Shown here piece after piece: positions 1 to 30,445 of a stretch of DNA of 40,685 nt. The DNA is from Macrostomum lignano (lineage: Eukaryota), in assembly GCA_002269645.1 (NCBI GenBank), contig NIVC01003845.1, positions 1-40,685 on the forward strand, given 5' to 3'. Below the pieces are notes generated by a model, which saw only the letters and a list, made by a program, of their open reading frames with translations, had not been told where the DNA came from and ran no database searches. Each line of letters begins with the position of its first letter. The first letter of the stretch is position 1. Position numbers and translations under genes: made by a program.

Positions 1-332
1 CTGGCCCTACTATCGCGACCTCCCGGAGCCCTGCATGTTTATCTGAACTATTGAGGTGAACTAACTTTTGCGTTGCCTTTAATAACAATTTTGCCTTTTA
101 TAATACTTTTATAATAGTTCGTTTTGCTTCCATAATAGTTCTCACTTTAATGGTTTACCTACATAATAGTTCTATCACAACCATTTTATGCACCAATTGT
201 TTTAGCACTGAATTGTGTTTTCTGCACCTTGCTTTGCACCTTTTCACCTGCATTTTCCTACGATATCAATTTTTCACTGTATACATATAATATAGTATTT
301 CGTTCAAAATTTGATATATAGAGGAGGAAAGT
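1..332 (+). repeat. 3' internal end (ORF3 tail, 3' UTR, PPT at 320-331) of an upstream copy of the same Gypsy element
   Basis: 1-332 matches 7945-8276 (one substitution seen, 200 vs 8144). It includes the last ORF3 codons (...WPYYRDLPEPCMFI*) and AGAGGAGGAAAG just before the LTR. Confidence 0.8.
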
Positions 333-1097
333 TGTACTAGTGCTATGCCTTTATCATAGTATACTCGAATGTTCTTTCAATGTAATAACTGTATATTCGA
401 ATCTTTCTTAGAAACTGAATCTACGCGAACGCCAAATAATAGTTTGTTTTAATGCGCGAATTAAATTGGAGAATTATTTTTTGTTTTAATCGTATGTGGG
501 GAAAATCACTATATATAGGAGCGGTTTTGCGACAAATATACTCTAACTGTCTTTTACCGTGAGCAAATAATTGCGAACAGAATAAGCAGTTCAATCTAAA
601 CCATTTCAAAGTCTTTGAGCTAAATAGCGACTTATTTATTTGCAAAACCTGTGAAACGATTCTAAGAAATTTGCTAAGAGAAGGGAATTGGGACTAATTC
701 TTGGAGATATACCAAGAGAGGCGCCGTGACCCTCTAGTCTCGGTGAACGCCCGATTAGGACTATACACTAATACATATACCAGTACTAGACCGCTCAGGC
801 CATAAGCTACTAGAACGCTACCAGAAAGCAAGCCATAAGCTACCAGAAACGCTACTAAGAACGCTACCAGAAACGCTACTAAGAACGCTACCAGAAATAT
901 TTAAATGAAATTCTAAGAAATAGTTAGGGAGTAAAAGCAAGTATAATCAGGATAACTGTAGTTGGCAAATCGGTGGGATTAAAATTGATAAAGTAAGAGG
1001 TGAAAGGCCTGTAACAACTTTGGTGGCAGCTCGTAGGATATTTAATAAACACTAATAGTTAGAAGTTTAGAAAGACAGAGCCAAAAGGCCTGTCACA
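333..1097 (+). repeat. 5' (possibly shared) LTR, 765 bp
   Basis: Starts TGTACTAG one base after the PPT and ends GGCCTGTCACA just before the PBS. Near-identical to 8277-9044 (1 substitution and 3 single-base homopolymer indels seen). The left boundary is inferred from the PPT. Confidence 0.85.
799..897 (+). repeat. Short tandem repeats inside the LTR (GCCATAAGCTAC / AACGCTACCAGA / AACGCTACTAAG units)
   Basis: Visible direct repeats, also present in the 3' LTR. Confidence 0.8.
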
Positions 1098-1099
1098 GC

Positions 1100-1118
1100 T
1101 GGTGGCAGCGGTGGGATT
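1100..1118 (+). promoter_or_regulatory. Primer-binding site, tRNA-Leu (AAG/TAG type)
   Basis: TGGTGGCAGCGGTGGGATT lies 2 nt after the LTR. Its reverse complement AATCCCACCGCTGCCACCA has the T-stem/acceptor/CCA layout of metazoan tRNA-Leu 3' ends. Confidence 0.88.
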
Positions 1119-1196: not shown

Positions 1197-2174
1197 ATGA
1201 ATCAGAATCAGGCTAATGACGCCATCGCCATGCTGGCAGAAGAATTGCGAAACCGACTAGAGATAGGGCCGATGAGACACGTTAAGATTCAGAAATTCAC
1301 ACCTACGCAAGACATTCGGATCTGGCTAACAGCCTTCGATCAGCGCTGTGAAGTAGAAGGGATAGATGAGGAACATAGGAAGCAGGAATTGCTAGCTAAT
1401 CTGGACCTGTCCACTGCATTCGCAGCGGTACAGCGCCTAAATCTGCCCGAGGATCTTGAATACGAAGAGTTCAAAGAGCGACTGATTGAGCGATTCGGAA
1501 GAATCGGTAGTTCCGCAGAATTCAGAGAGGAGTTTCGTGGAAGAATGCAAGGCAGAAATGAGCCTGTAGAGACTTTCGCAGACTGTTTGATCGAGCTGGC
1601 ATCGCGTGCATTTCCGAATATGACGGTTGAGCAAAGGGAAGAAGAAATTGTTGAGCAATTCATCAAGGGAATCAGAATTCCGTCAGAGACCCGTGAGAAG
1701 CTAATCTTTGCGCAGCCAGGCAATTTACAAGAGGCTAGAAGAATGCTAAGAAGGATGGAGGCTGCGTGGAACATGTCTCACAAGAATGTCAACATGAGAA
1801 TGGCCAAAGGCGAAGGCGAGAGTGAGCAGAAGGCAGATCAGGAGAAGCTTGAGGACATCATCAAGAAGCAGAGAGCAGAGTTAGAGCAACAGAAGAAGGC
1901 GATTGAGGAGCTGATGGAAGAGAAGAGAGCTAGCCGTCAGCAGTATCATCCGCAGAATCAATATCAAACGTACGCTCAGGTCGCTGGACCGCCGCAGCAG
2001 CCGAGATATCGGCCGCAGCAGCAGCAGCAGCAGCAGCCAGTATGGCGCGGTCAGCCTCAGTTCAACAGGCAGCCACAGCAACAGCAGCAGCCTCGAGCCT
2101 GCTACAATTGCGGGAAGCTTGGCCACATGGCGAGGAATTGCCAGAGCGCTAGGCCAAACGGTCAGCGAGTGTGA
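1197..2174 (+). CDS. gag: Gag (capsid-like domain, coiled coil, Q-rich linker, CCHC zinc knuckle)
   Basis: 325 aa ORF with a retrotransposon-gag-type segment (FRGRMQGRNEPVETFADCLIELASRAFP) and a C-terminal CYNCGKLGHMARNC. Confidence 0.95.
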   Translation: MNQNQANDAIAMLAEELRNRLEIGPMRHVKIQKFTPTQDIRIWLTAFDQRCEVEGIDEEHRKQELLANLDLSTAFAAVQRLNLPEDLEYEEFKERLIERFGRIGSSAEFREEFRGRMQGRNEPVETFADCLIELASRAFPNMTVEQREEEIVEQFIKGIRIPSETREKLIFAQPGNLQEARRMLRRMEAAWNMSHKNVNMRMAKGEGESEQKADQEKLEDIIKKQRAELEQQKKAIEELMEEKRASRQQYHPQNQYQTYAQVAGPPQQPRYRPQQQQQQQPVWRGQPQFNRQPQQQQQPRACYNCGKLGHMARNCQSARPNGQRV

Positions 2175-5100
2175 CTACCAGAAGCAGCAGGGAAACTGAG
2201 TAGCGAGGGCCGCTTTGCGAGGCCACGTCCCTCTAGCAACAATTATCGCGAATTTCAGGCCTCTGAATTTGTAAATAATGCGTATCGAAGTAATGCCAGA
2301 CAGTATAGTAACAGCAGAACGCATGCCGAATTCAATAAATTTCACAGAAAACCAAATAAAAATTTTGCACCTCGTGTACATACGCCGCTTGCACCTAGTC
2401 ATGCGTCTGCCAGCCACAGTAGGCCGAATAATAAAGTACAAAGTACAGTAATTCCGAATGAGCATTCGAAGAAAGAATTCGAAGAAGATACGGAGAGAAA
2501 AGGACGAGAAGCAGTCGTCAATGGAATGCTAAGAAACCGAAAGGTCTACTTCCTGCTAGACACAGGAGCTGGACATAATTTCCTAAGCAAGAGTACTTGG
2601 AAAAAGATGTTCAGAAGTGATGAAATTGAGTTGACTACTAGAAGAGTGACTACGTTTGACGGATCAAGTGTGCGAATTGAAGGAGAAGTCAGAACGAAAA
2701 TACGATTCGGAGAGATAGAGATTGAGACAGAGTTCCTGCTGTGCAATCACGAGTGTGACGACATACTCGGGATGGAGTTCTTCATGAACTTCTGCGACAG
2801 CATCAGCCTTTCCAGAGGAATGCTTGTATTAAAAGAAGGGACCTGCATCCCAATTCAGTTTACAAAATTACCCGTACGGGTTTGCCGAATTTACAGCCAT
2901 AACAGCGTGACTATACCAGCGAATAGCGCTCTTCGAATTCCAATTAGAATGACTAAAGGATCAGAAGCTAACTATGGAACGCCAATGGTCATTGACACCA
3001 TTGGAGGCCAAGTGACTACGAAGAGAAATTCCTTAGAGATGATTCCTACTCTAGTGACCATGAACGATGGAACAGGAGTAGTGGAAATAATCAATCGACA
3101 GAATGACGATATCAGACTGACAAGATCTACGCTGATTGGAGTGGCCAAACCCTTGAAGCCAGGAGGCCTGGCCTACTCTATTAACAGCAAAGGTCAAGCC
3201 AGTTCAGATGATGCAATTAGGACAGTGAAGAGTGAAGAGAGTGAGTACAGCTGGATAAACGAGATCGATTTAGGAGAAGAGCTAACATCAGAACAGAAAG
3301 GACTAGTGATCGATTTGCTAAAGAAGAACAAGGAAGCATTTTCGCAGACCAACCAAGACATGGGTCTCACCCATCTTGTGACTCATGAAATATCTCTAAA
3401 AGATACCACACCGGTCAGGATTCCAACACGCAGAATTCCACCACATCTGCAAAAGCAAGTAGATGAGCAACTTGACGACATGCTTGCTAAGAACCTGATC
3501 CGACCATGCTATAGTACTTATTCAACGCCGCTAGTGATAGTTCCTAAGAAGGATGGATCCATAAGAATCGTCAGTGACTTCAGGGTCCTGAACTCGAGAG
3601 TGAACTATTACCCATATCCATTGCCGAACATACAAGAGACTTTCGCTCAGTTATCTGGAAGCAAGTACTTCAGTAGTCTAGATTTAAACTCTGGATACTG
3701 GCAGGTACCTATCAAAGAAGAGCACAAATTTATGACAGCCTTTTCCACCCTTACCAGAGGCCAGTTCGAATATCAGGTCATGGCACAGGGCTTGTCTAAC
3801 GCTCCTGGTACATTCCAGAGACTCATGAATTTGGTGCTGATGGGAATACAGCACAAATTCGCGATGTCGTACATAGATGATATTGTGACATACTCAGAGA
3901 AATTCGAAGATCATCTCGGTCATCTGCAAGAAGTATTTCAAAGACTAATCTCAGCAGGACTAAAATTAAGACCAAAAAAGTGCAACTTGTTTCAGAAAGA
4001 GCTAAAGTACTTAGGGCATATCGTAGGAAGAGAAGGGATTAGAACAGACCCAGCTAAGATCGAAGCGATACAGTCATGGCCTACGCCGAAAGAGGTCAAA
4101 GAACTGCGAAGCTTCTTGGGGTTGTGTAACTACTACTGCAGATTTGTAAAGAATTACGCAGAGGCAGCGCATCCACTATTTCAATTAACTAAGAAAGGTA
4201 TTCAAAACTTTAGGGAAAAGTGGACCAAGAAGCATGACGAGGCTTTCCAGCAGTTGAAGCAGAGAATGACATCGACCGAAGTACTCGCGTACCCAGAATT
4301 CTCAGAGAACGAAAATGTTCGAATGGTATTAGACACCGACGCAAGCGAAGACCGAATTGGTGCTTGCCTGGGTCAAATACAATCGGACGGGGTTGAAAGA
4401 CCCATTGCTTACTTCAGCAGAGCAATGAAAGAGTCTGAGAAAAGATATCCGATTACCAGAAAAGAGCTATTAGCGCTAGTAGATGGCATGAAACACTTCC
4501 GATTTTACCTAATTGGCAAAAGGTTTCTGGCCCGCACAGACCACAAGGCAATTCTATGGCTATTGCGCCAGACCGAAGCCCAAGGAATTCTCGGAAGATG
4601 GATTGAAAGACTGAGTGAGTTTCAATACGATATTGAGCACCGCAGTGGAGCCAAACATTCCAACGCAGATGGATTGTCACGGCGACCCTCGGAACCACCA
4701 GTTGAACAGAAAGATGCTAAGATCAAAGAGAATGAGGCCGAAATTCCTAAGATGACAATAGAAACCAGCGCTGTGAAACAAGTCGTGACTAGCAGCGTGA
4801 AAGATCAGAGTTGCCAGACCGACTTCACAGAAGAGTATGAATCAGATTCCGAAGACGAATTCGCAGATGATGAATACGAAGATGCCAGTGATCAGTTCGA
4901 AGATGATGATGACATCTATGAAGATGCAAGAGACTATTTCGAAGAGGAAGAGACAGTGTGCAGAAAGCTTCTGACAGATTACCTCTCGGTTCCATTGAAG
5001 AAAGAGCAGCTGACTTCAGCGCAGCATGCTGATCCTTCTATAAGAACCTTGATGGACTGGAAGCAGAAGAAAGTGCGTGAGCCGAAGTTACCAGAAAATG

Positions 5101-6716
5101 CATCCGGAGAATTGAAGAAGATGGTTAAGTTCTACGAGCAGATGAAAATCGAAGATGAAATGCTGACAGTCAGTGAAGACGGTAAACGAAAAGTAGTATT
5201 GCCAGAGAAGATTGAGAAAGATGTATTCAAAGAGCTGCACGACAGTCCGCTAGCAGGCCACCTAGGTCGGGACAAGACGCTACAGCGAGTCCGAGACCGA
5301 TTCTGGAGGCCGGGGTTAGTGACTGCAGTTGAAAAGTACATCGCAGAATGCATCCCGTGTCTGGAAAGTAAAAGCGGAAATAAAGTACGAGCACCGGTGC
5401 AGACCTTTCCGATATGTGAGCCATTCCATCGGCTGCACATAGATTTGATCGGTCCGATATCAAAGGAAAGCAGAAGAGGACACCGATATGTACTTACTGT
5501 TGTAGATAGTACAACGAAGTTCCCATTCGCTTTTCCGGTTCGGAATCAGAAATCCGCTACTGTTATCAAAACGATACAAGAGAGAATTTTCAGCGAGTAT
5601 GGCCAGTGCCAATGGATACACACTGATAATGGCAAGACTTTTGTAAGTCACCAATTTCAGGCATTCTGTACCCTATACGGCATTAAGCATACTTGCACTA
5701 CGCCTTACCATGCTCAGAGTAACGGGCTTGTCGAAAGATTTAACAAGCAAATTAAATCGATTGTAACCTGTTTGATTGAAAAGGATCATTCAGATTGGGA
5801 TCTGCTCATACCCGCCGCTTTGGTAGCTGTGCGAACCAGTGTTAATCAAACTACTGGGTTCACACCACACTACTTACTATTCGGGAGAGAAGCAGATTTG
5901 CCAATAGATAGCATTGTGAAAAGGCCAAGACTATACCGAGACTATCCTAGTTATGTGCTGGATCATGCGAAGAGAATCGAGGAGACAAAAGCAATTGTGC
6001 GAAGACAACTCGAAAAGGTGCGAGAGAAAAGGCAAGAGGACGAAGTTGAGAATCGTCAGCCTAAAAATGTGCCAGTTGGCTGTCTCGCTCTCATCAACAA
6101 CCCTCAACTTCACCAAGAGGAGAGCCACAAGTTTCATCGAAAGAAGAGAGCAGCCTATCGAGTACTTGCGAAGATATCAGACACAGTGTTCCGTGTGCAA
6201 AGAGAAATCAATGGCGAAAGGAGCGGAGAAAAACTATTAGTACATAGAAATAATCTGACTCCAGTGCCGAAATCCGAAATTGATTTACCAGAGGAAATTA
6301 ATAATAATTTAAAACCAGCACCAGTGTCAACTAAGAAGAAGGAATCGCCGAAGCCGAAGAAAAGAATTTGCCATAGACAAAAAGAAGTTAGAATTCCAGA
6401 AGTTCAAATTTTAGAGGAGGAAAGCTCAGACGAAGAAAACAGAATTCAATGGAGAGTATTCGCAGATCCGAATTCGCAGAGTGAAAACGAAGGAAATGAA
6501 GAATTGAACAGTGAGAATACAGAGAGAGCGACTGACTCAGATGAGCCATCAGAAGAAGAAGAAGGAGCAATAGAGTTAGAGGAGGAACGTGCTAACACAG
6601 TAGGAGGCTATAATTTGAGACCCCGAGACAATAGAGTGACTCAGCAAGAGAGAGAAAGAGAAGGCGCGACAGGATTTGTGCCCCGAAGGCGCTATGCGAG
6701 ATATTTAGCACCTTAA
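2175..6716 (+). CDS. pol: Pol (aspartic protease, RT, RNase H, integrase), in frame with gag behind a single TGA
   Basis: LLDTGA (PR), YIDDI (RT), LDTDAS (RH), H-x6-H...CxxC and DLIGP/TDNG/ERFN (IN). I translated 2175-2525 by hand and found no stops, so the frame is open from the gag stop onward. The first ATG (2526) is only about 10 codons before the PR active site. Confidence 0.95.
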   Translation, partial: LPEAAGKLSSEGRFARPRPSSNNYREFQASEFVNNAYRSNARQYSNSRTHAEFNKFHRKPNKNFAPRVHTPLAPSHASASHSRPNNKVQSTVIPNEHSKKEFEEDTERKGREAVVNGMLRNRKVYFLLDTGAGHNFLSKSTWKKMFRSDEIELTTRRVTTFDGSSVRIEGEVRTKIRFGEIEIETEFLLCNHECDDILGMEFFMNFCDSISLSRGMLVLKEGTCIPIQFTKLPVRVCRIYSHNSVTIPANSALRIPIRMTKGSEANYGTPMVIDTIGGQVTTKRNSLEMIPTLVTMNDGTGVVEIINRQNDDIRLTRSTLIGVAKPLKPGGLAYSINSKGQASSDDAIRTVKSEESEYSWINEIDLGEELTSEQKGLVIDLLKKNKEAFSQTNQDMGLTHLVTHEISLKDTTPVRIPTRRIPPHLQKQVDEQLDDMLAKNLIRPCYSTYSTPLVIVPKKDGSIRIVSDFRVLNSRVNYYPYPLPNIQETFAQLSGSKYFSSLDLNSGYWQVPIKEEHKFMTAFSTLTRGQFEYQVMAQGLSNAPGTFQRLMNLVLMGIQHKFAMSYIDDIVTYSEKFEDHLGHLQEVFQRLISAGLKLRPKKCNLFQKELKYLGHIVGREGIRTDPAKIEAIQSWPTPKEVKELRSFLGLCNYYCRFVKNYAEAAHPLFQLTKKGIQNFREKWTKKHDEAFQQLKQRMTSTEVLAYPEFSENENVRMVLDTDASEDRIGACLGQIQSDGVERPIAYFSRAMKESEKRYPITRKELLALVDGMKHFRFYLIGKRFLARTDHKAILWLLRQTEAQGILGRWIERLSEFQYDIEHRSGAKHSNADGLSRRPSEPPVEQKDAKIKENEAEIPKMTIETSAVKQVVTSSVKDQSCQTDFTEEYESDSEDEFADDEYEDASDQFEDDDDIYEDARDYFEEEETVCRKLLTDYLSVPLKKEQLTSAQHADPSIRTLMDWKQKKVREPKLPENASGELKKMVKFYEQMKIEDEMLTVSEDGKRKVVLPEKIEKDVFKELHDSPLAGHLGRDKTLQRVRDRFWRPGLVTAVEKYIAECIPCLESKSGNKVRAPVQTFPICEPFHRLHIDLIGPISKESRRGHRYVLTVVDSTTKFPFAFPVRNQKSATVIKTIQERIFSEYGQCQWIHTDNGKTFVSHQFQAFCTLYGIKHTCTTPYHAQSNGLVERFNKQIKSIVTCLIEKDHSDWDLLIPAALVAVRTSVNQTTGFTPHYLLFGREADLPIDSIVKRPRLYRDYPSYVLDHAKRIEETKAIVRRQLEKVREKRQEDEVENRQPKNVPVGCLALINNPQLHQEESHKFHRKKRAAYRVLAKISDTVFRVQREINGERSGEKLLVHRNNLTPVPKSEIDLPEEINNNLKPAPVSTKKKESPKPKKRICHRQKEVRIPEVQILEEESSDEENRIQWRVFADPNSQSENEGNEELNSENTERATDSDEPSEEEEGAIELEEERANTVGGYNLRPRDNRVTQQEREREGATGFVPRRRYARYLAP

Positions 6717-6965
6717 ACCATGACGTAAGCAATTTCCCATAAGAAACAGTGTTAAATAGTTAAATTTCCGTATTAGAATTACTTATCTGCTTATAAAATT
6801 TGACATGCTGTACATAGAGCGAATCTGTAAATACCATATTAATCTACAAAATGCGATCTTTAACTTGATACTTTACTCAAGAAAATCTATCAAAAAATAA
6901 AAAAGTTATAAAAAGAAATAGAAAATCCATAAAAATTTAGTTGTCAAATCTGTCAAATCTGGCAT

Positions 6966-7033
6966 GCCCCGCCCCACGCGCGAGGGAAGTGCTTCGAAGA
7001 GGTCCAGTTTTCCGGCCCGCCAGCCTATAAATA
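6966..7033 (+). promoter_or_regulatory. Candidate internal promoter for ORF3: GC box (GCCCCGCCCC, 6966-6975) and TATA box (TATAAATA, 7026-7033)
   Basis: Consensus Sp1/KLF-type box and TATA in a GC-rich island about 80 nt upstream of the ORF3 ATG, downstream of an AT-rich spacer after pol. Confidence 0.6.
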
Positions 7034-7114
7034 CGAGCACCCCGCAGCCCCCACAGATCCCATAGCTCACTGCTAGCTTCCTTTCTATTCTAAGAGTCAT
7101 TCGAAGAGAACCAT

Positions 7115-7990
7115 ATGGATAACTCAGTCGACATTCTGCAAGAGTTAATCGGTGACCTGTCCGAAGAGATTGAGCCTCAGCCGGAGCCTAATGTTGACGA
7201 GAACGAGGCGCCGCTACGTTGTCCAACAAGACCAAAGGCGCCTGGTGTAAGCAACAAAAGGCCGAGGGCATCGCCACAAGCATCATCGCCGTGCCGCCAA
7301 TTAAACGTGGAAGGCCCCGAGCAGAAGCGCGCCGCCCTGGTGGCAGCACAGGCAGCTGCGCCCGTGCGCTCCTATGTTGTCAAGGCCACGCCAGGATCAT
7401 CAACATCAAGCCGAACGCAGCAGTTGGTGTCACCGCCAGCTGCCCCATCATCGAGAAAGACCCCGGCACCACGGCAGAAGAAATCGACAGCTGCGACACC
7501 GCCAGCTCAGCAGCCAGCGTCGCAGCCGAGCCTGCAATCAGCGCAGCAGTCAGCGCTGCAGCCGAGCCTGCAATCAGCGCAGCAGTCTAGCCAGCCATCA
7601 GCACTACAGCCGAGCCAGCAGCAATCGAATTCGCAGAGAGATTTTCATCGCATCGTCCGAGAACTTGTGGAGACTCGCGGAGCAGAGGTGGAAAAGCTAC
7701 GCTTCCACATTGAGCAATACGCACTGAAAGTAGCATACCACCGATCCGACAGCCGACAGCGCTACCCCCAATGCTCGCAAATTTGGACACACCTGAAGTT
7801 TCTGAGGGATCAATTCAGTTACCAGGAAGCTGTCGCTGTTCTCCAGGAAGTCGCCTATCGCCTCCAGCGAGCTATAAGAGCCAACCCGCCGCCAGCGCTG
7901 ACGGTCCTCGACGAAGAGTACCGATGGTTTTTCGCTCAAGTCGGCTGGCCCTACTATCGCGACCTCCCGGAGCCCTGCATGTTTATCTGA
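7115..7990 (+). CDS. ORF3, accessory protein of unknown function (not env-like)
   Basis: Intact 291 aa ORF between pol and the PPT. Acidic N-terminus, KRPR NLS-like motif, S/P/Q/A-rich low-complexity middle and a ~115 aa complex C-terminal domain. No signal peptide or TM helix apparent. Confidence 0.75.
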   Translation: MDNSVDILQELIGDLSEEIEPQPEPNVDENEAPLRCPTRPKAPGVSNKRPRASPQASSPCRQLNVEGPEQKRAALVAAQAAAPVRSYVVKATPGSSTSSRTQQLVSPPAAPSSRKTPAPRQKKSTAATPPAQQPASQPSLQSAQQSALQPSLQSAQQSSQPSALQPSQQQSNSQRDFHRIVRELVETRGAEVEKLRFHIEQYALKVAYHRSDSRQRYPQCSQIWTHLKFLRDQFSYQEAVAVLQEVAYRLQRAIRANPPPALTVLDEEYRWFFAQVGWPYYRDLPEPCMFI

Positions 7991-8263
7991 ACTATTGAGG
8001 TGAACTAACTTTTGCGTTGCCTTTAATAACAATTTTGCCTTTTATAATACTTTTATAATAGTTCGTTTTGCTTCCATAATAGTTCTCACTTTAATGGTTT
8101 ACCTACATAATAGTTCTATCACAACCATTTTATGCACCAATTGGTTTAGCACTGAATTGTGTTTTCTGCACCTTGCTTTGCACCTTTTCACCTGCATTTT
8201 CCTACGATATCAATTTTTCACTGTATACATATAATATAGTATTTCGTTCAAAATTTGATATAT

Positions 8264-8275
8264 AGAGGAGGAAAG
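8264..8275 (+). promoter_or_regulatory. Polypurine tract
   Basis: AGAGGAGGAAAG followed by T and then the TGTA LTR start. Confidence 0.75.
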
Positions 8276-8276
8276 T

Positions 8277-9044
8277 TGTACTAGTGCTATGCCTTTATCA
8301 TAGTATACTCGAATGTTCTTTCAATGTAATAACTGTATATTCGAATCTTTCTTAGAAACTGAATCTACGCGAACGCCAAATAATAGTTTGTTTTAATGCG
8401 CGAAATAAATTGGAGAATTATTTTTTTGTTTTAATCGTATGTGGGGAAAATCACTATATATAGGAGCGGTTTTGCGACAAATATACTCTAACTGTCTTTT
8501 ACCCGTGAGCAAATAATTGCGAACAGAATAAGCAGTTCAATCTAAACCATTTCAAAGTCTTTGAGCTAAATAGCGACTTATTTATTTGCAAAACCTGTGA
8601 AACGATTCTAAGAAATTTGCTAAGAGAAGGGAATTGGGACTAATTCTTGGAGATATACCAAGAGAGGCGCCGTGACCCTCTAGTCTCGGTGAACGCCCGA
8701 TTAGGACTATACACTAATACATATACCAGTACTAGACCGCTCAGGCCATAAGCTACTAGAACGCTACCAGAAAGCAAGCCATAAGCTACCAGAAACGCTA
8801 CTAAGAACGCTACCAGAAACGCTACTAAGAACGCTACCCAGAAATATTTAAATGAAATTCTAAGAAATAGTTAGGGAGTAAAAGCAAGTATAATCAGGAT
8901 AACTGTAGTTGGCAAATCGGTGGGATTAAAATTGATAAAGTAAGAGGTGAAAGGCCTGTAACAACTTTGGTGGCAGCTCGTAGGATATTTAATAAACACT
9001 AATAGTTAGAAGTTTAGAAAGACAGAGCCAAAAGGCCTGTCACA
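8277..9044 (+). repeat. 3' LTR, 768 bp
   Basis: Matches 333-1097. Similarity ends exactly at ...GGCCTGTCACA (9044), followed by unrelated AT-rich DNA. Confidence 0.9.
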
Positions 9045-11190: not shown

Positions 11191-14100
11191 AAACATCAAA
11201 GAAGCGCAATGTCAAACATAGAAGAGCCAACATATCGAACATAAAAGAGTTACCATATCAAACATAGAAGAGCCACCATGTCGAACATTAAAGAGCCACC
11301 ATGTAGAATATTGAAGAGCCACCATGAAGAACATTAAAGAGCCACCATGTCAAACATTTAAGAGCCACCCTGTCAAACATAAAAGAGCCACCATGTCGAA
11401 CATTTAAGAGCCACCCTGTCAAACATAAAAGAGCCACCATGTCGAACATAAAAGAGCCACCATGTCAAACATAAAAGAGCCGCCATGTCAAACATAAAAG
11501 AGCCACCATGTCAAACATAAAAGAGCCACCATGTCAAACATAAAAGAGCCACCATGTCGAACATAAAAGAGCCACCATGTCAAACATAAAAGAGCCACCA
11601 TTTCGAACATTAAAGAGCCACCATTTCGAACATTAAAGAGCCACCATTTTGAACATTTAAGAGCCACCATTTCGAACATTAAAGAGCCACCATTTCGAAC
11701 ATTAAAGAGCCACCATTTTGAACATTTAAGAGCCACCATGTCAAACAATTAGAAGCCACCATGTCAAACATTAAAGAGCCACCATGTCGAACATTTAAGA
11801 GCCACCATTTCGAACATTAAAGAGCCACCATGTCGAACATTAAAGAGCCACCATGTCAAACATTTAAGAGCCACCATGTCAAACATTAAAGAGCCACTTT
11901 GTCGAACATTAAAGAGCCACCATGTTAAACATAAAAGAGCCACCATGTCGAAAATAAAAGAGCCACCATGTCAAACATAAAGAACCACCATGTCAAACAT
12001 TTAGGAGCCACCATGTCAAACATATATGTGACTTTATGTCAAACATTAAAGAGTTACCATTTCAAACCTTAAAAAGCCACTATGTCGAACATTAAAGAGC
12101 CACCATGTCTAACATAAAAGAGCTATACCATGAAGAACATTAAAGAGCCACCATGTGGAACATAAAAGAGCCACCATGTAGAATATTAAAGAGCCACCAT
12201 GTCAAACATTTAAGAGCCACCATGTCGAACATTAAAGAGCCACTATGTCAAACATTTAAGAGCCACCATGTCAAACATATATGTGACTTTATGTCAAACA
12301 TTAAAGAGCCACCATGTCGAACATTAAAGAGCCACCATGTGAAACATTAAGGAGCCACCATGTCGAACATTAAAGGGCCACCATGTAGAACATAAAAGAG
12401 CCACCATGTCGAACATTAAAGAACCACCATGTCGAACATTAAAGAGCCACCATGTCAAACCTAAAAGAGCCACCATGTCGAACATTAAAGAGCCACCATG
12501 TCAAACATAAATCTGGCATGATGTCAAACATTAAAGTGCCACCATATCGAACATTAAAGAGCCACCATGTCTAACAGTAAAGAGCCACCATGTCGAACAT
12601 TAAAGGGCCACCATGTAGAACATTAAAGAACCACCATGTCGAACATTAAAGAGCCACCATGTCAAACCTAAAAGAGCCACCAAGTCGAACATTAAAGAGC
12701 CACCATGTCAAACATAAATCTGGCATGATGTCAAACATTAAAGTGCCACCATATCGAACATTAAAGAGCCAACATGTCAAACCTAAAAGAGCCACCATGT
12801 CGAACATTAAAGAGCCACCATGTCTAACATAAATCTGGCATGATGTCAAACATTAAAGTGCCACCGTATCGAACATTAAAGAGCCACCATGTCTAACAGT
12901 AAAGAGCCACTATGTCAAAAATTAAAGGACCACCATGTCGAACATTAAAGAGCCACCATGTCAAAAATAGAAGAGCCACCATGTCAAACATAGAAGAGCC
13001 ACCATGTCTAACATTAAAGAGCCACTATGTCGAACATTAAAGAGCCACCATGTCTGACATAAAAGAGCCACTATTTTGAACATTAAAAGCCACCATTTCG
13101 AACATTAAAGAGCCACCATGTCGAACATAAAAGAGCCACCATGTCAATCATTAAAGAGCCACCATGTCAAACATAAAAGAGCCACCATTTTGAACATAAA
13201 AGAGCCAACATGTCAGACATTAAAAAAGCCACCGTATCAGATATAAGAGTTACTATGTAGAACAAAAAAGAGCCACCATTTCGAACAAAAAAGAGCCACC
13301 ATGTCAAACATGAAAGAGCCACCATGTCAAACACAAAAGAGCCAACATGTCAAACATAAAGAGCCACCATATCAAACATTTAAGAGCCACCCTGTCGAAT
13401 ATCAAAGAGCCACCATGTCGAACATTAAAGAGCCACCATGTCTAACATTAAAAGTCACCATGTTAAACATTAAAGAGCCACCATATCAAGCATAAAAGAG
13501 CCACCATGTCAAACCAAAAAGAGCCACCATGTCGAAAATTTAAGAGCTAAAATGTAGAATATAAAAGAGCCACCATGTCAAACCTAAAAGAGCCACCATG
13601 TCGAACACTTAAGAGCCACAATGTAAAACATTAAAGAGCCACCATGTAAAACAAAAGAGCCACCATGTTAAACATAAAAGAGCCACCATGTAGAATATTA
13701 AAGAGCCACTATGTTGAACATTAAAGAGCCATCATACTGAACATTAAACAGCCACCATGTCAAACCTAAAAGAGCTACCATGTCAACATAAAAGAGCTAC
13801 CATGTCAAACATTAAACAGCCATCATGTCAAACCTAAAAGATCCACCATTTCGAACACTTAAGAGCCACAATGTAGAATATTAAAGAGCCACCATGTCAA
13901 ACAAAAGAGCCACCATTTCTAACATTAAAGAGCCACCATGTCAAACATTTAAGAGCCACCATGTCAATTATATATGTGTCTTTATGTCATACATTAAAGA
14001 GCCACCATTTCGAACATTAAGGAGCCACCATGTCAAACATTTAAAAGCCACCTTGTCAAACATTAAATAGCCACTTTGTCGAACATTAAAGGGCCACTGT

Positions 14101-14275
14101 GTCAAACATAAAAGAGCCACCAGGTTAAACATTAAAGAGCCACCATGTCAAACAATAAAGAGCCACCATGTCAAACATAAAAGAGCCACCATGTCAGACA
14201 TTAAAAAGCCATTGTTTCAAACATAAAAGAGTTGCCATGTAGAACATAAAAGAGCCACCATGTCAAACATAAAAT
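11191..14275 (+). repeat. 23-bp satellite array, consensus GAGCCACCATGTC(A/G)AACAT(T/A)AAA
   Basis: Direct tandem repetition over ~3.1 kb with moderately diverged monomers. Confidence 0.95.
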
Positions 14276-14361
14276 TTACACAATTTCAAACGTAAAAGTA
14301 AGCGAATTTTAAAGGAGCCACTATAATGCTAAGGAAATTGTCGCACTAGCTACTTATTGTC

Positions 14362-14792
14362 TGGTGGATGCTTGCTATTTGGGGATGCTATCTATGTAGG
14401 GGATGCTTGCTATCTGGGGGATGCTTGCTATCTGGGGGATGCTTGCTATCTGGGGGATGCTTGTTATCTGGGGGATGCTTGCTATCTGAGGGATGCTTGC
14501 TATCTGGGGGATGCTTGCTATCTGGGGGATGCTTGCTATCTGAGGGATGCTTGCTATCTGGGGATGCTTGCTATCTGGGGGATGGTTGCTATCTAGGGGA
14601 TGCTTGCTATCTGGGGGATGCTTGCTATCTGGGGGATGCTTGCTATCCGGGGGTTGCTTGCAATCTGGAGGATGCTTGCTATCTGGGGGATGCTTGCTAT
14701 CTGGGGATGCTTGCTATCTGGGGGATGCTTGCTATCCGGGGTTGCTTGCAATCTGGAGGATGCTTGCTATCTGGGGGATGCTTGCTGTCTTG
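14362..14792 (+). repeat. 18-bp minisatellite GGGGGATGCTTGCTATCT
   Basis: Tandem copies with variable G-run; explains the spurious GDACYL/GGCLLS ORFs. Confidence 0.95.
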
Positions 14793-15550: not shown

Positions 15551-18500
15551 AGGCGTCATGTAAAAAAGCATAGAAGCGTCATGTAAACAATCATTGAAGC
15601 GTCATGTAAAAATCATAGAAGCGTCATGTAAACAATCATAGAAGCGTCATGTAAAAAATCATAGAAGCGTCATGTAAACAATCATAGAAGCGTCATGTAA
15701 AAAATCATAGAAGCGTCATGTAAAAAATCATAGAAGCGTCATGTAAAAAATCATAGAAGCGTCATGTAAACAATCATAGAAGCGTCATTTAAAAAATCAT
15801 AGAAGCGTCATGTAAAAATCATAGAGTTTAAAAGATCATAGAAGCGTCATGTAAAAAATCATAGAAGCGTCCTGTAAAAAATCATAGAAGCGTCATGTAA
15901 AAAATCATAGAAGCGTCATGTAAACAATCATAGAAGCGTCATGTAAAAAATCATAGAAGCGTCATGTAAACAATCATAGAAGCGTCATGTAAACAATCAT
16001 AGAAGCGTCATGTAAACAATCATAGAAGCGTCATGTAAAAAATCATAGAAGCGTCATGTAAACAATCATAGAAGCGTCATGTAAAAAATCATAGAAGCGT
16101 CATGTAAACAATCATAGAAGCGTCATGTAAAAAATCATAGAAGCGTCATGTAAACAATCATAGAAGCGTCATGTAAAAAATCATAGAAGCGTCATGTAAA
16201 CAATCATAGAGTTTAAAAGATGATAGAAGCGTCATGTAAAAAATCATAGAAGCGTCATGTAAAAATCATAGAAGCGTCATGTAAAAAATCATAGAAGCGT
16301 CATGTAAAAAATCATAGAAGCGTCATGTAAACAATCATAGAAGCGTCATGTAAACAATCATAGAAGCGTCATGTAAACAATCATAGAAGCGTCATGTAAA
16401 AATCATAGAAGCGTCATGTAAACAATCATAGAAGCGTCATGTAAAAAATCATAGAAGCGTCATGTAAAAAATCATAGAAGCGTCATGTAAAAAATCATAG
16501 AAGCGTCATGTAAACAATCATAGAAGCGTCATGTAAAAAATCATAGAAGTGTCATGTAAAAATCATAGAGTTTAAAAGATCATAGAAGCGTCATGTAAAA
16601 AATCATAGAAGCGTCATGTAAACAATCATAGAAGCGTCATGTAAACAATCATAGAAGCGTCATGTAAACAATCATAGAAGCGTCATGTAAACAATCATAG
16701 AAGCGTCATGTAAAAAATCATAGAAGCGTCATGTAAACAATCATAGAAGCGTCATGTAAAAAATCATAGAAGCGTCATGTAAACAATCATAGAAGCGTCA
16801 TTTAAAAAATCATAGAAGCGTCGTTTAAAAAATCATAGAAGCGTCATGTAAACAATCATAGAAGCGTCATGTAAAAAATCATAGAAGCGTCATGTAAACA
16901 ATCATAGAAGCGTCATGTAAAAAATCATAGAAGCGTCATGTAAACAATCATAGAAGCGTCATGTAAAAAATCATAGAAGCGTCATGTAAAAAATCATAGA
17001 AGCGTCATGTAAAAAATCATAGAAGCGTCATGTAAACAATCATAGAAGCGTCATGTAAACAATCATAGAAGCGTCATGTAAACAATCATAGAAGCGTCAT
17101 GTAAACAATCATAGAAGCGTCATGTAAAAAATCATAGAAGCGTCATGTAAACAATCATAGAAGCGTCATGTAAAAAATCATAGAAGCGTCATGTAAACAA
17201 TCATAAAAGCGTCATTTAAAAAATCATAGAAGCGTCGTTTAAAAAATCATAGAAGCGTCATGTAAACAATCATAGAAGCGTCATGTAAAAAATCATAGAA
17301 GCGTCATGTAAAAATCATAGAAGCGTCATGTAAAAAATCATAGAAGCGTCATGTAAACAATCATAGAAGCGTCATGTAAAAAATCATAGAAGCGTCATGT
17401 AAACAATCATAGAAGCGTCATGTAAAAAATCATAGAAGCGTCATGTAAACAATCATAGAAGCGTCATGTAAAAAATCATAGAAGCGTCATGTAAACAATC
17501 ATAGAAGCGTCATGTAAAAATCATAGAAGCGTCATGTAAAAAATCATAGAAGCGTCATGTAAAAAATCATAGAAGCGTCATGTAAACAATCATAGAGTTT
17601 AAAATGATAGAAGCGTCATGTAAAAAATCATAGAAGCGTCATGTAAAAATCATAGAAGCGTCATGTAAAAAATCATAGAAGCGTCATGTAAAAAATCATA
17701 GAAGCGTCATGTAAACAATCATAGAAGCGTCATGTAAACAATCATAGAAGCGTCATGTAAACAATCATAGAAGCGTCATGTAAAAATCATAGAAGCGTCA
17801 TGTAAACAATCATAGAAGCGTCATGTAAAAAATCATAGAAGCGTCATGTAAAAAATCATAGAAGCGTCATGTAAAAAATCATAGAAGCGTCATGTAAACA
17901 ATCATAGAAGCGTCATGTAAAAAATCATAGAAGCGTCATGTAAAAATCATAGAGTTGTAAAAATCATAGAAGCGTCATGTAAAAATCATAGAAGCGTCAT
18001 GTAAACAATCATAGAAGCGTCATGTAAACAATCATAGAAGCGTCATGTAAACAATCATAGAAGCGTCATGTAAACAATCATAGAAGCGTCATGTAAAAAA
18101 TCATAGAAGCGTCATGTAAAAAATCATAGAAGCGTCATGTAAACAATCATAGAAGCGTCATTAAAAAATCATAGAAGCGTCATGTAAACAATCATAGAAG
18201 CGTCATGTAAAAAATCATAGAAGCGTCATGTAAAAATCATAGAAGCGTCATGTAAAAATCATAGAAGCGTCATGTAAAAATCATAGAAGCGTCATGTAAA
18301 AAATCATAGAAGCGTCATGTAAACAATCATAGAAGCGTCATGTAAAAAATCATAGAAGCGTCATGTAAAAATCATAGAAGCGTCATGTAAAAAATCATAG
18401 AAGCGTCATGTAAACAATCATAGAAGCGTCATGTAAAAATCATAGAAGCGTCATGTAAACAATCATAGAAGCGTCATGTAAAAAATCATAGAAGCGTCAT

Positions 18501-20025
18501 GTAAAAAATCATAGAAGCGTCATGTAAAAAATCATAGAAGCGTCATGTAAACAATCATAGAAGCGTCATGTAAAAATCATAGAAGCGTCATGTAAAAAAT
18601 CATAGAAGCGTCATGTAAAAAATCATAGAAGCGTCATGTAAAAAATCATAGAAGCGTCATGTAAAAAATCATAGAAGCGTCATGTAAACAATCATAGAAG
18701 CGTCATGTAAAAATCATAGAAGCGTCATGTAAACAATCATAGAAGCGTCATGTAAAAAATCATAGAAGCGTCATGTAAAAATCATAGAAGCGTCATGTAA
18801 AAAATCATAGAAGCGTCATGTAAAAATCATAGAAGCGTCATGTAAACAATCATAGAAGCGTCATGTAAAAATCATAGAAGCGTCATGTAAACAATCATAG
18901 AGTTTAAAAATCATAGAAGCGTCATGTAAAAATCATAGAAGCGTCATGTAAAAAATCATAGAAGCGTCATGTAAAAAATCATAGAAGCGTCATGTAAAAA
19001 ATCATAGAAGCGTCATGTAAACAATCATAGAAGCGTCATGTAAAAATCATAGAAGCGTCATGTAAACAATCATAGAAGCGTCATGTAAAAAATCATAGAA
19101 GCGTCATGTAAACAATCATAGAAGCGTCATGTAAAAATCATAGAAGCGTCATGTAAAAATCATAGAAGCGTCATGTAAAAAATCATGGAAGCGTCATGTA
19201 AACAATCATAGAAGCGTCATGTAAAAAATCATAGAAGCGTCATGTAAAAATCATAGAGTTAAAAATCATAGAAGCGTCATGTAAAAAATCATAGAAGCGT
19301 CATGTAAACAATCATAGAAGCGTCATGTAAAAATCATAGAAGCGTCATGTAAAAATCATAGAAGCGTCATGTAAACAATCATAGAAGCGTCATGTAAAAA
19401 TCATAGAAGCGTCATGTAAACAATCATAGAAGCGTCATGTAAAAATCATAGAAGCGTCATGTAAAAATCATAGAAGCGTCATGTAAAAAATCATAGAAGC
19501 GTCATGTAAAAATCATAGAAGCGTCATGTAAAAAATCATAGAAGGTCATGTAAAAATCATAGAAGCGTCATGTAAACAATCATAGAAGCGTCATGTAAAC
19601 AATCATAGAAGCGTCATGTAAAAAATCATAGAAGCGTCATGTAAAAAATCATAGAAGCGTCATGTAAAAATCATAGAAGCGTCATGTAAAAATCATAGAA
19701 GCGTCATGTAAACAATCATAGAAGCGTCATGTAAAAATCATAGAAGCGTCATGTAAAAAATCATAGAAGCGTCATGTAAAAATCATAGAAGCGTCATGTA
19801 AAAAATCATAGAAGCGTCATGTAAAAATCATAGAAGCGTCATGTAAACAATCATAGAAGCGTCATGTAAAAATCATAGAAGCGTCATGTAAACAATCATA
19901 GAAGCGTCATGTAAAAAAGAAGAAGTGTCATTAAAGAAGCGTCATGGAAAAAAAAGAAGCGTCATGTAACGAAGCGTCATGTCAGAAGCGTCATGAAAGA
20001 AGTGTAAAGAAGCGTCATGTAAAAA
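15551..20025 (+). repeat. 23-bp satellite array GAAGCGTCATGTAAA(C/A)AATCATA, highly homogeneous
   Basis: ~4.5 kb of tandem monomers, with 22-bp variants arising from A-run length. Confidence 0.97.
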
Positions 20026-20858
20026 TTAAAAGAAGCTATTGTGCTGTGCTGGGGAGACTTACTGAGATGTCAAGGCTTACGGAGAAAAACTGAGATTACG
20101 GGGGGGGGGGTTTCTGAGCTGTCAAAGCAAAAGTCAGAAACTACTTCAAACTTCATGTACTTTCCTCAATTTTTTATTACATTCTTTGTTGGCTCGCCAC
20201 GGGGGGCGCTGATAGAAGAAGAGTCATGTGAAAAAGAAAAGAAGCACTATGTATACATAAAAGAAAAGTCATGTCGAAGTTAAAAGATTCATTTGGGAAT
20301 TGCTACGATGTCAAGGCTTGGAGGGAATCGTTATAGTGCTGTGATTCTTAAAGAAGGAATCACTAAAATGTCAAGGCTTAGGGGAGAAGAATTGCTGAGA
20401 TTTCAAGGCTTTAGGTTGGGTTAAAGTTAGGTTTAGGTCAGGTTTGGGTTGAGGGTTAGATTTTAGCGGGTTTCAAGGTTAACAGGGGATTTTTCAGATA
20501 TCAAGGTTTATGGGGGGCATTCCTGACATGTCAAGGCCAACGGGGGGAATAGCTGAGATTTCAAGGCTCATGGGGGAATAAATGAGATGTCAAGGCTAAA
20601 GTCAGAAGCAAGGACTACTTAAGTAGTCCTTGGTCAGAAGCTACATGTAGTCTATTGAAAACTTTTTTTCAATATTTGTTGGCTCCTCACGGGAGGGATC
20701 GCTGATAGAAAAAGCGTAATGTAAAAAATAAAAGAAGCTTCATGTCGAAGTTAAGAGATTCATTTGGGAATCCCTACGATGTCGAGGCTTCCAGGGAATC
20801 GCTATAATGCTGTAGTGCTATAATGACTGTTGGAGAGAATTACTGAAATGTCAATGCT

Positions 20859-20916
20859 TTAGGGTTAGGGTTAGAGTTAGGGTTAGGGCTAGGGTTAGGG
20901 CTAGGGTTAGGGTTAG
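20859..20916 (+). repeat. Interstitial telomere-like (TTAGGG)n tract in the tail of B
   Basis: About 10 TTAGGG/CTAGGG units; a more degenerate tract lies at ~20411-20460. Confidence 0.85.
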
Positions 20917-21740
20917 AAGGTTGACAGATTTTTTAAGATTTCAAGGCTTATGGGGCATTGCTAAGATGTCAAGGGGATTGATATGCTAAGGCTTGTGGGG
21001 GGATTTTCTGACATGTCAAGGCTTACAAGGTATAATGCAAAGAGACGCTTACATGTAGTTTATTAAAAAAACTTGTACTGCATTTTTTTGGCTCCCCAAC
21101 GGGGGGCGCTGATTGCTAGTCTAAATATACTAAAAATGGTCTGTCTGTGTCTATCTATCTATGTGATCGATTAGAGAAAAAATGGCTGGACCGATTTTGT
21201 TCGAACTTGCACTGTTCGATCAAAAATTTTCCCGTGACTGTACATGCATCGTGGCTAAGAAATTGCTCGATGCTAAAGGCATTAAATATTCGAAAAACAT
21301 GCTTTTTTGCAAAGGTCAAGCAGCTCTTTCGACTTGAAATGCATTGTAAGAATGCTAGAGAAAAAACTGACTGGTTGAATTCTGATTCTGAAATAGATTG
21401 CATCATGACTGAATTGTAACTCCGACTTGAATTGAAAATGCAGTGTGGAAGCGTAGCACCAGACTTGATTTAAATTGCGTAACCATATTGTTAACTGATA
21501 CCGACTGACTGAAAAACTGATTATGTCATAACTGCTTCGTGTGATTTACTCTATGCTTGGATTTTAAAGTGTTGAATTATATAAGTGCAAAATTTGATGT
21601 TATCAAAACGATGAGAGCTAGCCTAGAGGTAAACAGACTGAACTGCTAAATGCAGAAACGATGGTTCGAATTTTCATAGAGTATAATTTTTTTTAATTGA
21701 AGCTTTTCAACGTCAGGAAAACTAAAAGACTTTTTAAAAA

Positions 21741-29377: not shown

Positions 29378-30445
29378 TTACCGAATGCAATGATTCGTGT
29401 ACATCTTGGACAAACCGGCCTTCTCGCTCAAGTTTCGCATGAAACGCAGGAAGTAGTTCTCCCCGCGATTCTGCTTTGTTGAGAACATAGGCTGTCCATT
29501 GGAATCCGTGTTGGATAGTGGACGCGGGAACAGATGGTTGTCCTTGGTTGTTGGAGGTAGCAGTTGTAGATATCTCCTCACTTTGGCCGTGTCGTAGATC
29601 CGAGCTTGTTTGTTGTCCGGCCTGGCCTTCGCCTTCACAGGATCGGCTGACTTATTCTTCGTTGGCAGAGCAGGAAGACAGTAGTACTCCTTGCCGTCAG
29701 AATCCGTGTGCAATTCAAGCGAGTCCCTTTGTCTCAGGAACTTCAGATGCTCCTGGCCACGCTCTCCAAAGGAGTAAAGAACATAGAACAGAAATTTAGC
29801 CTGCTCGATTTCAGCCGTAGTCCCTTCAAAGTAGCACCGCAACTTCTGCATGTCGCCTTCTTCAATTGGTTCATACTGCCTGGTGCAGCCACCATCTCGA
29901 TGGAAATCACGAACCTTGACACGCAGCATCTCGTTGCAGGAATTGAATTCCTCACCACCGATTATATCGACAGGCAGCTTCAGAACCATGCGTAGGAAAC
30001 GCTGAATTCCAGCCCGGATACAGATGAGAGAGGCCGGCGAGTAGAACGAGCCATCCTGTTTCTTCAGCTTGAAGTAGAAGTACCGAAGATATTGGTTCAA
30101 TGTAGGATTGTTGACATGCTGAATGTTGCGCAGATTCTCCCCTTCCAGGAAGTCTCGAAAACGTTGGCCATGCTGGTACATCTGCTTCCGAGTATCCTCA
30201 GGCAGACTCTCGATCTCGATTCTGTCCATCTCGGAAACGTCTATCTTTTCATCTCCATCGATCATTGGCAGCCCAGTATCAGCTGGACCATTTTGGACAT
30301 ACTTCAGGAACGCATCGAAATCTTCGTCGTGCCGATCAACGGCAGAGGATTCCGAGAGGAAGTTCAGTTCATCCTGCGTGATGTTGCCGAGGTCCTCACA
30401 CGGGAGGTTACCCCAATTAATATAATGTATTATCGGGTCGCTCAT
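29378..30445 (-). CDS. Crypton-type tyrosine recombinase (DUF3504-like), C-terminally incomplete as read
   Basis: LNQYLRYFYFKLKKQDGSFYSPASLICIRAGIQRFL, FGERGQEHL (first catalytic R), TKNK and YTNHCIR (HxxR). The distal H/W and catalytic Tyr are not in this ORF. Confidence 0.8.
   Translation of the reverse strand: MSDPIIHYINWGNLPCEDLGNITQDELNFLSESSAVDRHDEDFDAFLKYVQNGPADTGLPMIDGDEKIDVSEMDRIEIESLPEDTRKQMYQHGQRFRDFLEGENLRNIQHVNNPTLNQYLRYFYFKLKKQDGSFYSPASLICIRAGIQRFLRMVLKLPVDIIGGEEFNSCNEMLRVKVRDFHRDGGCTRQYEPIEEGDMQKLRCYFEGTTAEIEQAKFLFYVLYSFGERGQEHLKFLRQRDSLELHTDSDGKEYYCLPALPTKNKSADPVKAKARPDNKQARIYDTAKVRRYLQLLPPTTKDNHLFPRPLSNTDSNGQPMFSTKQNRGENYFLRFMRNLSEKAGLSKMYTNHCIR

Follow-up and report, generated by a model that had tools for sequence, protein, structure and literature searches.

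In the flatworm Macrostomum lignano, a young Ty3/gypsy retrotransposon has a third open reading frame (ORF3) between its pol gene and its polypurine tract; judged by its conservation and its pattern of substitutions, this frame is a real gene under purifying selection. The product belongs to an orphan family and is neither env, nor Tas or Bet, nor CERV. The element lies in a stretch of 40,685 nucleotides (positions 1 to 40,685 of contig NIVC01003845.1, assembly GCA_002269645.1), which is referred to below as the window. To account for these observations as a whole, we propose that ORF3 is a selected accessory gene that has its own TATA-type promoter and specifies a trans-acting, probably nuclear, adaptor; we consider this explanation somewhat favored.

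Structure of the element

The order of the Pfam domains in pol (protease, RT, RNase H, integrase) and a gag with a CCHC knuckle place the element in the Ty3/gypsy group (Metaviridae). It is young, its 5′ and 3′ LTRs being 99.5% identical in a self-comparison, and its pol is 98% identical to the M. lignano protein PAA58172. The features of the element and its immediate surroundings are as follows.

1..332, forward strand: tail of the internal region of an upstream tandem copy, comprising the 3′ end of another ORF3 copy (14 codons and the stop) with the 3′ UTR and polypurine tract that follow it, and joined to the shared LTR
333..1097, forward strand: 5′ LTR, 765 bp, TGT...ACA (self-match; ends fixed by other copies)
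1100..1118, forward strand: putative primer-binding site TGGTGGCAGCGGTGGGATT, assigned by its position 2 nt past the LTR
1197..2174, forward strand: gag, 325 aa, with a CCHC zinc knuckle, intact (ORF and Pfam)
2526..6716, forward strand: pol (protease, RT, RNase H, integrase), 1396 aa counted from the first ATG, intact (ORF and Pfam)
6717..6960, forward strand: AT-rich spacer from pol to the ORF3 unit, GC about 0.2 (composition)
6961..7060, forward strand: promoter-like GC-rich block, with a predicted transcription start at about 7050-7065 (motifs and cross-lineage alignment)
6967-6975, forward strand: GC box CCCCGCCCC
7001-7009, forward strand: GGTCCAGTT
7026-7033, forward strand: TATAAATA, 89 nt before the ORF3 ATG
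7061..7114, forward strand: predicted 5′ UTR, nearly invariant among close copies
7077-7091, forward strand: pyrimidine tract, followed by AG at 7093-7094, which is found 20 nt before the ATG and might act as a splice or trans-splice acceptor
7115..7990, forward strand: ORF3, 291 aa, ATG at 7115, stop at 7988-7990
7991..8263, forward strand: 3′ untranslated region of the internal part
8264..8275, forward strand: polypurine tract AGAGGAGGAAAG (purine run, in a region that can also be aligned with locus L010)
8277..9044, forward strand: 3′ LTR, 768 bp (self-match; TGT...ACA ends)

The self-comparison matched window positions 1-1097 to 7945-9044 at 99.5% identity, which raised the possibility that ORF3 resides inside a long LTR, in U3. 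This possibility was ruled out by other copies of the element. Four of them (L001 to L004), retrieved through their pol proteins, start at window position 332/333 and stop at 9044/9045 in the copy alignment; 4-bp target duplications surround the TGT...ACA ends (ACTG in L003, ATTT in L004 and ATCT in L002); and L001 shows a complete LTR-internal-LTR-internal tandem array. The C-terminal residues of ORF3 (aa 278-291) were placed by tblastn at window 2-43. Positions 1-332 are thus the tail of an upstream tandem copy, so that the LTR starts at 333 and 8277 and ORF3 is internal. An earlier note on this DNA had placed ORF3 between pol and the polypurine tract, and the boundaries listed above bear this out.

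The earlier note had also described the element as a member of a regulated, complex-retrovirus-like lineage, in part because of an apparent readthrough arrangement. As an analogy the description is fair; its readthrough argument, however, is weak, since the five other copies of the family have pol in the −1 frame with respect to gag, and the same-frame arrangement is peculiar to the copy in the window.

ORF3 encodes an orphan protein

All of the motifs named in the earlier note were present in an intact frame of 291 aa, including the acidic N-terminus (ILQELIGDLSEEIE at aa 7-20), the KRPR motif at aa 48 and the decapeptide QPSLQSAQQS, which occurs twice (aa 137 and 149). The protein is organized as follows.

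aa 4-18: acidic amphipathic helix
aa 31-51: conserved motif EAPLRCPTRP...NKRPR
aa 70-90: KRAAL-helix
to about aa 166: disordered P/Q/S/A-rich linker
aa 167-275: helical bundle (AlphaFold2)
aa 277-288: conserved tail GWPYYRDLPEPC

AlphaFold2, run with a five-sequence alignment, predicted helices at aa 167-209, 221-233, 236-253 and 259-275 with pLDDT of about 80-95, in agreement with the helical C-terminal domain of about 115 aa that had been suspected from the letters. Outside this domain the same model has one short helix (aa 68-81) and is otherwise disordered.

The hydropathy of ORF3 peaks at 1.02 (Kyte-Doolittle, 19-residue span) and the net charge of aa 1-30 is −10; with hydropathy this low and an N-terminus this acidic, ORF3 has no membrane helix or signal peptide, and the earlier statement that it is not env holds. 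None of the hallmarks of env (signal peptide, membrane anchor, fusion-protein fold) was found, nor did ORF3 match an entry in Pfam, in PDB or among viral structures. A Pfam search with ORF3 and all members of its family gave no family even at E up to 1, and a sequence profile search of PDB gave no match. Foldseek comparison of the ORF3 models with PDB (both models) and BFVD yielded nothing better than E of about 0.3, so the C-terminal domain, for which the earlier note had advised this search, has no known relative in those two collections. The Pfam, PDB and BFVD searches likewise gave no sequence or structural link to known regulators; as to Tas and Bet in particular, there was no Pfam hit at E up to 1 and no Foldseek hit below E 0.1 in PDB or BFVD.

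One could envision that ORF3 acts outside the nucleus as a particle- or membrane-associated factor, for example as an env substitute in cell-to-cell spread or as a prenylated adaptor. Some Drosophila Gypsy elements that lack env are reported to spread from cell to cell by means of small non-env proteins (bioRxiv 10.1101/2025.03.14.642691, partial text), and the window ORF3 ends in Cys-x-x-x, a CaaX-like terminus that it shares with L004 and L006. However, in three other lineages the cysteine is at −3 and not −4, and we rejected CaaX prenylation because the position of this residue varies between lineages. ORF3 moreover has no hydrophobic segment, is mostly disordered and carries a basic NLS-like motif. 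We therefore regard a non-nuclear role as very unlikely.

ORF3 is under purifying selection

At 58% GC, a frame of 291 codons stays open by chance with a probability of roughly 3e-5. We determined dN/dS on intact copies by the Nei-Gojobori method. For the whole ORF3 gene, omega was 0.11-0.22; by region it was 0.09 for aa 1-60 and 0.28 for the linker, and in the C-terminal domain dN was 0.12 while synonymous differences were beyond saturation. Since pol in the same copies gave omega of 0.13-0.27, ORF3 is, by this ratio, as constrained as pol. Among six close copies, pol was unbroken in all six and ORF3 was intact in four, each of the other two having a single frameshift. A frameshift in the ORF3 of L004, seen in the nucleotide alignment, was an artefact of alignment at 72% identity; direct translation showed the frame to be intact.

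Of the four outcomes that the earlier note had listed as speaking against its reading, three are neutral evolution, disruption in most related copies and a match to a known env or a captured host exon. The omega values (0.1-0.28) are not those of a neutral sequence, most close copies retain the frame, and no match to a known env or host exon was obtained.

These data also bear on whether ORF3 is a functionless chance frame in GC-rich, low-complexity sequence. The region is indeed GC-rich and repetitive and contains ORFs of 111-123 aa in other frames, and the protein has no Pfam or structural match. Against this, the frame and its motifs are kept in homologues whose synonymous divergence is saturated, omega is 0.1-0.28, and the fold of the C-terminal domain is predicted with confidence. 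The shared motifs and the signature of selection refute the chance-frame reading, which we regard as scarcely credible.

ORF3 homologues occur in several Gypsy lineages of Macrostomum

An exact-protein look-up and a word-indexed homology search with ORF3 found no relatives. Four homologues were recovered when 1.84 billion representatives were searched exhaustively with phmmer; their genomic contexts, together with one more homologue found in a flank, revealed the same unit in several diverged Gypsy lineages. In all, at least five diverged lineages have an ORF3 homologue, placed either after pol or in a derivative that lacks pol.

On the minus strand of L002 there is a 345-aa ORF downstream of a pol whose integrase and tail are 71% identical to those of the window element; ORF3 identity is 33%. 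L006, a Logan contig (run SRR28338156), has the order pol-ORF3-LTR-gag and an ORF3 of 251 aa, with identities to the window of 88% for RT, 65% for integrase and 31% for ORF3. The same annotated 349-aa protein is encoded at L008 and L009, two independent insertions of a pol-less derivative of roughly 6 kb, and the LTR pairs within these insertions are 99.9-100% identical. L010 is a related pol-less element whose ORF3 has one frameshift. Finally, L007 is a solitary, truncated ORF3-like unit (P0135) that is annotated as a gene; there is no LTR, gag or pol within 10 kb, and the unit faces away from the neighboring gene. P0135 lacks the N-terminal half and has one premature stop in the aligned tail. 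It is the only relative of ORF3 outside elements, and it shares the element-type upstream block. No copy of the window family has ORF3 annotated as a gene.

Across lineages the ORF3 proteins are only 30-45% identical, and they share a common architecture: an N-terminal acidic amphipathic helix, variable disorder, EAPLRxPTRP...NKRP, a KRAAL...AP(V/I)(R/K)S helix, a further disordered stretch rich in P/Q and, finally, a helical domain (about 115 aa) that ends in GWPYYRDLPxPCxF. In two lineages the NLS-like core is without its fourth basic residue. The Ty3/gypsy clade that bears ORF3 is restricted to Macrostomum.

In a sister family (L005), whose pol is 49% identical to that of the window element, an unrelated ORF occupies the place of ORF3. 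When this ORF was compared with the ORF3 family profile, only the 15-residue acidic helix was matched, with a probability of 1%. The acidic amphipathic helix is kept even in this otherwise unrelated protein.

The region of ORF3 has a GC content of 0.58, versus 0.44 in pol, and is flanked on both sides by AT-rich spacers, which makes it a compositional island. Such an island, with a promoter-like block of its own, could be a host gene that was captured together with its promoter and rides as a passenger without serving the element, or the true function of ORF3 could lie in a host copy such as the solitary P0135. The existence of that homologous unit outside any recognizable element, and the unrelated ORF at the same place in the sister family, are in keeping with capture. 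Yet no homologue outside elements was found except P0135, which is itself truncated and interrupted, ORF3 omega is pol-like across lineages with saturated synonymous sites, and ORF3 is intact in recently transposed pol-less derivatives, where a useless passenger should decay. A host gene without benefit to the element is therefore, in our opinion, quite improbable, and we continue to regard ORF3 as an accessory gene of the element.

A conserved promoter-like block precedes ORF3

The GC box and TATAAATA, which the earlier note had reported before ORF3, were found at the positions listed above. Its further claim was that ORF3 is self-promoted. The nonamer GGTCCAGTT occurs exactly once per ORF3 unit, always upstream, in eight of the ten loci; in the window there is one match, versus 0.14 expected. 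A TATA-like box follows 15-25 nt after the nonamer, and in five lineages this box is 89-97 nt before the ATG. The TATA is canonical in the window family, L010 and L007, as well as in L006, which has no GGTCCAGTT; it is degenerate in the L002 minus-strand unit and in L008/L009, where a CCAAT motif is found upstream. When the window was aligned with L010 from the pol stop to the polypurine tract, only two non-coding islands could be aligned, namely the core at 6995-7073 (E 9e-8) and the region of the polypurine tract. The solitary L007 unit has the same upstream block and its own AATAAA, and the annotation from which its gene call derives is based on transcriptome data (PMC5730564). A heat-shock element was considered as well and rejected, as the sequence was not canonical by eye when compared with the pattern in PMC12801592.

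Because the block is conserved across lineages and precedes an annotated solitary unit, an internal promoter is the best reading of these data. The claim of self-promotion is upheld to this extent, by a GGTCCAGTT-TATA block that is conserved and keeps its distance to the ATG across diverged lineages and by a solitary annotated unit with the same block, all of which is indirect support. We think that the upstream block is probably a working promoter.

An alternative is that ORF3 is a real accessory gene that is expressed by RNA processing of a full-length, LTR-driven transcript, either by cis-splicing, as for retroviral env and Cer1 cerv, or by spliced-leader trans-splicing upstream of the ATG. 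The pyrimidine tract at 7077-7091 and the AG that follows it could serve as the acceptor, and similar Y-rich-AG sites precede the ORF3 ATG in other lineages, although chance sites of this kind are frequent. In M. lignano about 39% of genes are trans-spliced and polycistronic units are cut (PMC5730564), and Cer1 produces its CERV protein from a spliced mRNA (PMC10309623). In addition, the annotated P0132 gene model begins upstream of the putative TATA, a start more in keeping with read-through transcription of the element than with a subgenomic RNA. What RNA processing leaves unexplained is why the TATA and GGTCCAGTT are held at a fixed spacing to each other and to the ATG despite divergence of the coding sequence to saturation, and why the solitary L007 unit is annotated as a gene though it has no upstream LTR. 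RNA processing is therefore the less probable route, albeit one with appreciable weight, and the internal promoter is retained in the model discussed below.

ORF3 coding blocks are exchanged between lineages

Close copies differ from one another mainly in ORF3. Over most of gag-pol, L004 does not differ from the window at all (100% identity), but over 7233-8132 the identity is only 72-85%; for L001, L002 and L003, identity to the window is 86-92% over 6933-7232 and about 99% elsewhere. The divergence sets in within a few bases of the ORF3 ATG, and the promoter-like block and 5′ UTR that precede it are nearly invariant. L003 is a chimera of two N-terminal ORF3 alleles. At synonymous sites the swapped blocks have diverged by 0.9 to more than 1.7, and pol by 0.003-0.05. 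A similar transition was observed between the pol-less elements L008 and L010, which are 93.7% identical up to the ORF3 promoter and cannot be aligned beyond it. Recombination between co-existing lineages explains these blocks, though not their match to the ORF3 coding region.

Discussion

Several parts of this picture have precedents. LTR retrotransposons with a non-env extra ORF are already known from rotifers (PMC5408684), plants (PMC11963269, partial text) and C. elegans (Cer1, PMC10309623), and foamy viruses express regulators from an internal promoter (PMC13220597, partial text). The ORF3 gene itself is mentioned neither in a survey of 137 LTR families of M. lignano (Mag, CsRN1, Gmr1/Osvaldo and others) nor in the genome annotation paper, and literature searches with the gene identifiers of ORF3 homologues, and with Macrostomum plus ORF3, found nothing.

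Among the known systems, CERV of the C. elegans Ty3/gypsy element Cer1 has several traits in common with ORF3: both are non-env proteins of invertebrate Gypsy-type elements, restricted to their lineage, fast-evolving and devoid of homologues elsewhere (PMC10309623). Export of Cer1 genomic RNA requires CERV, which is active in the nucleus and bears candidate motifs for nuclear import and export (PMC10309623). CERV differs from ORF3 in being a protein of 517 aa translated from an mRNA that is spliced from five exons and has exons in common with gag, and in having three structured domains (H, M and G, one of them G-protein-like) plus a Cys-rich loop (PMC10309623). ORF3, in contrast, is a single unspliced frame after pol that specifies one helical bundle, has no Cys-rich loop and is preceded by an apparent promoter of its own. 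The two are not homologous by the exhaustive phmmer search, whose hits were only the four Macrostomum-type proteins, with no nematode protein among them. CERV is, by analogy, the best functional model for the possible role of ORF3.

With respect to layout, the element resembles foamy viruses, in which a second promoter downstream of pol yields 3′-coterminal regulatory and accessory transcripts for Tas and Bet (PMC13220597, partial text); the corresponding promoter here is a predicted one. Foamy viruses differ in that they are vertebrate retroviruses with env, and their internal promoter is located within env (PMC13220597, partial text). LTR elements of bdelloid rotifers carry varied non-env third ORFs after pol that, like ORF3, are exchanged modularly between lineages; those that are non-env are recognizable enzymes (GDSL esterase/lipase, DEDDy exonuclease), whereas the orphan ORF3 of Macrostomum is no enzyme and is largely disordered (PMC5408684). 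In plant Ty3/gypsy elements such as Retand, a long region between pol and the 3′ LTR holds extra ORFs of obscure function (PMC11963269, partial text). These elements are of another kingdom and clade and have no homology with the ORF3 element. We know of no description of a conserved TATA-type promoter in the plant elements with extra ORFs. By analogy, then, ORF3 resembles CERV in the kind of role it might have and foamy viruses in layout, and it is a member of none of the protein families compared here.

How might ORF3 work? According to our model, it would be transcribed from its own TATA-type promoter in the GC-rich island, about 60-150 nt upstream of the ATG, and the short mRNA would run to the polyadenylation site of the 3′ LTR. 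In trans, and probably within the nucleus, its product would serve as an adaptor and aid expression of the element through transcription or RNA handling. The basic KRP(R) core matches the classical monopartite pattern for nuclear import, a second basic cluster (KRAA) is present, and the long P/Q/S-rich linker has two more short motifs that are conserved. An amphipathic helix, these basic clusters, the lack of a membrane segment and the intact ORF3 of recently moved pol-less derivatives suggest an adaptor that is soluble, probably nuclear, acts in trans and is of benefit to the element. Taken by themselves, the sequence motifs leave a nuclear location about evenly balanced. The more specific role of a regulator, be it of transcription, RNA export or silencing, is a tentative assignment from short motifs that we would rate as rather doubtful; this applies as well to the transactivator or anti-silencing protein that the earlier note had suggested.

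A still broader scenario is that an invertebrate Ty3/gypsy clade has independently evolved a complex programme, in which an internal promoter would give rise to a subgenomic mRNA, and this to a trans-acting nuclear regulator of the Tas or the Rev/CERV type. The coding block would be swapped as a cassette through conflict or co-adaptation with a host factor, and P0135 would be a host-adopted copy. We offer this scenario as a speculative one that is unlikely to hold in full.

Accessory regulators are a hallmark of complex retroviruses. Those of LTR retrotransposons are, to our knowledge, barely known, CERV of Cer1 being the one studied case. ORF3 provides a second, unrelated accessory example, present in several active-looking families of one flatworm, and its conserved internal promoter block and the allele swapping that is limited to ORF3 are concrete, checkable signatures. 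Because M. lignano offers transgenesis, 5′-end RNA libraries and a genome browser, the acquisition of regulators by retroelements can be examined in this organism largely with existing data.

Variation within ORF3

Comparison of ORF3 in the window (7115-7990, plus strand) with the other genomic copies of the element at L001-L004, and of the diverged homologue at L008 with that at L010, identified allele blocks with saturated synonymous divergence that are restricted to the ORF3 coding region. Outside this region, the copies bearing the divergent blocks are 99-100% identical. Two of the N-terminal alleles are combined as a chimera in L003.

The window ORF3 ends in CMFI (7976-7990), in which the cysteine lies fourth from the end in a CaaX-like arrangement, and a similar end is present in L004 and in L006, a locus with a diverged homologue. 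Since ORF3 ends in C-x-F in three other lineages, prenylation is doubtful.

Arrangement of gag, pol and the LTRs

The gag and pol genes of the window copy (1197-6716) share one frame with a single stop between them. In all five of the other copies with which this region was compared (L001-L004), the frame of pol is shifted by -1 with respect to that of gag, the difference being due to a single frameshifting indel, and the readthrough layout noted earlier therefore seems to be peculiar to the window copy.

The window element is part of a tandem array in which one LTR (333-1097) is common to two internal regions, and the contig starts within the upstream one (1-332). L001 (7750-24067) carries a complete example of such an array. 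We also observed that a lookalike of the LTR end and primer-binding site (PBS), GGCCTGTAACAACTTTGGTGGCAGCTCGTAGGAT, recurs within the LTR (1006-1040), approximately 80 nt before the genuine junction of LTR end and PBS (1087-1118).

The rest of the window contains the following features.

11191-14274, 14360-14790 and 15553-24168: large satellite arrays, built from 23-bp units of two kinds (134 and about 375 copies) and from an 18-bp unit
25872-27305, minus strand: complete hexokinase-like reading frame (Pfam Hexokinase_1 and _2)
29378-30445, minus strand: 355-aa ORF that matches the QRICH1 domain weakly (E 0.002, short of the Pfam cut-off)
32364-33802, minus strand: near-duplicate of the hexokinase-like frame, split across two frames

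ORF3 units in pol-less and solitary contexts, and the ORF of a sister family

The ORF3 unit is retained, together with a gag remnant and a pol tail, in three pol-less derivatives. These measure about 5.7-6.1 kb, and the two LTRs of each are 99.9-100% identical. Two of these, at L008 and L009, are independent insertions that encode the same 349-aa annotated protein.

L008 6393-12473: pol-less derivative
L009 6476-12390: pol-less derivative
L010 5932-11609: pol-less derivative
L005 13848-14675: 275-aa ORF of a sister Gypsy family (pol 49% identical)
L007 9780-10480: solitary ORF3-like unit (P0135, 118 aa, gene Mlig026206.g2)

The 275-aa ORF of the sister family begins 4 nt past the pol stop, with neither a spacer nor a promoter block between the two. 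It has no detectable homology to ORF3; both nevertheless contain an acidic helix of the EFLQMLLD type and resemble each other in general layout.

The solitary unit bears the GATGCGGTCCAGTT-TATA block found in ORF3 units as well as its own AATAAA, and no LTR, gag or pol is present within 10 kb of it. Its protein, P0135, is without the N-terminal half, and the aligned tail is interrupted by a single premature stop. The solitary unit could be either a relic or a copy appropriated by the host.
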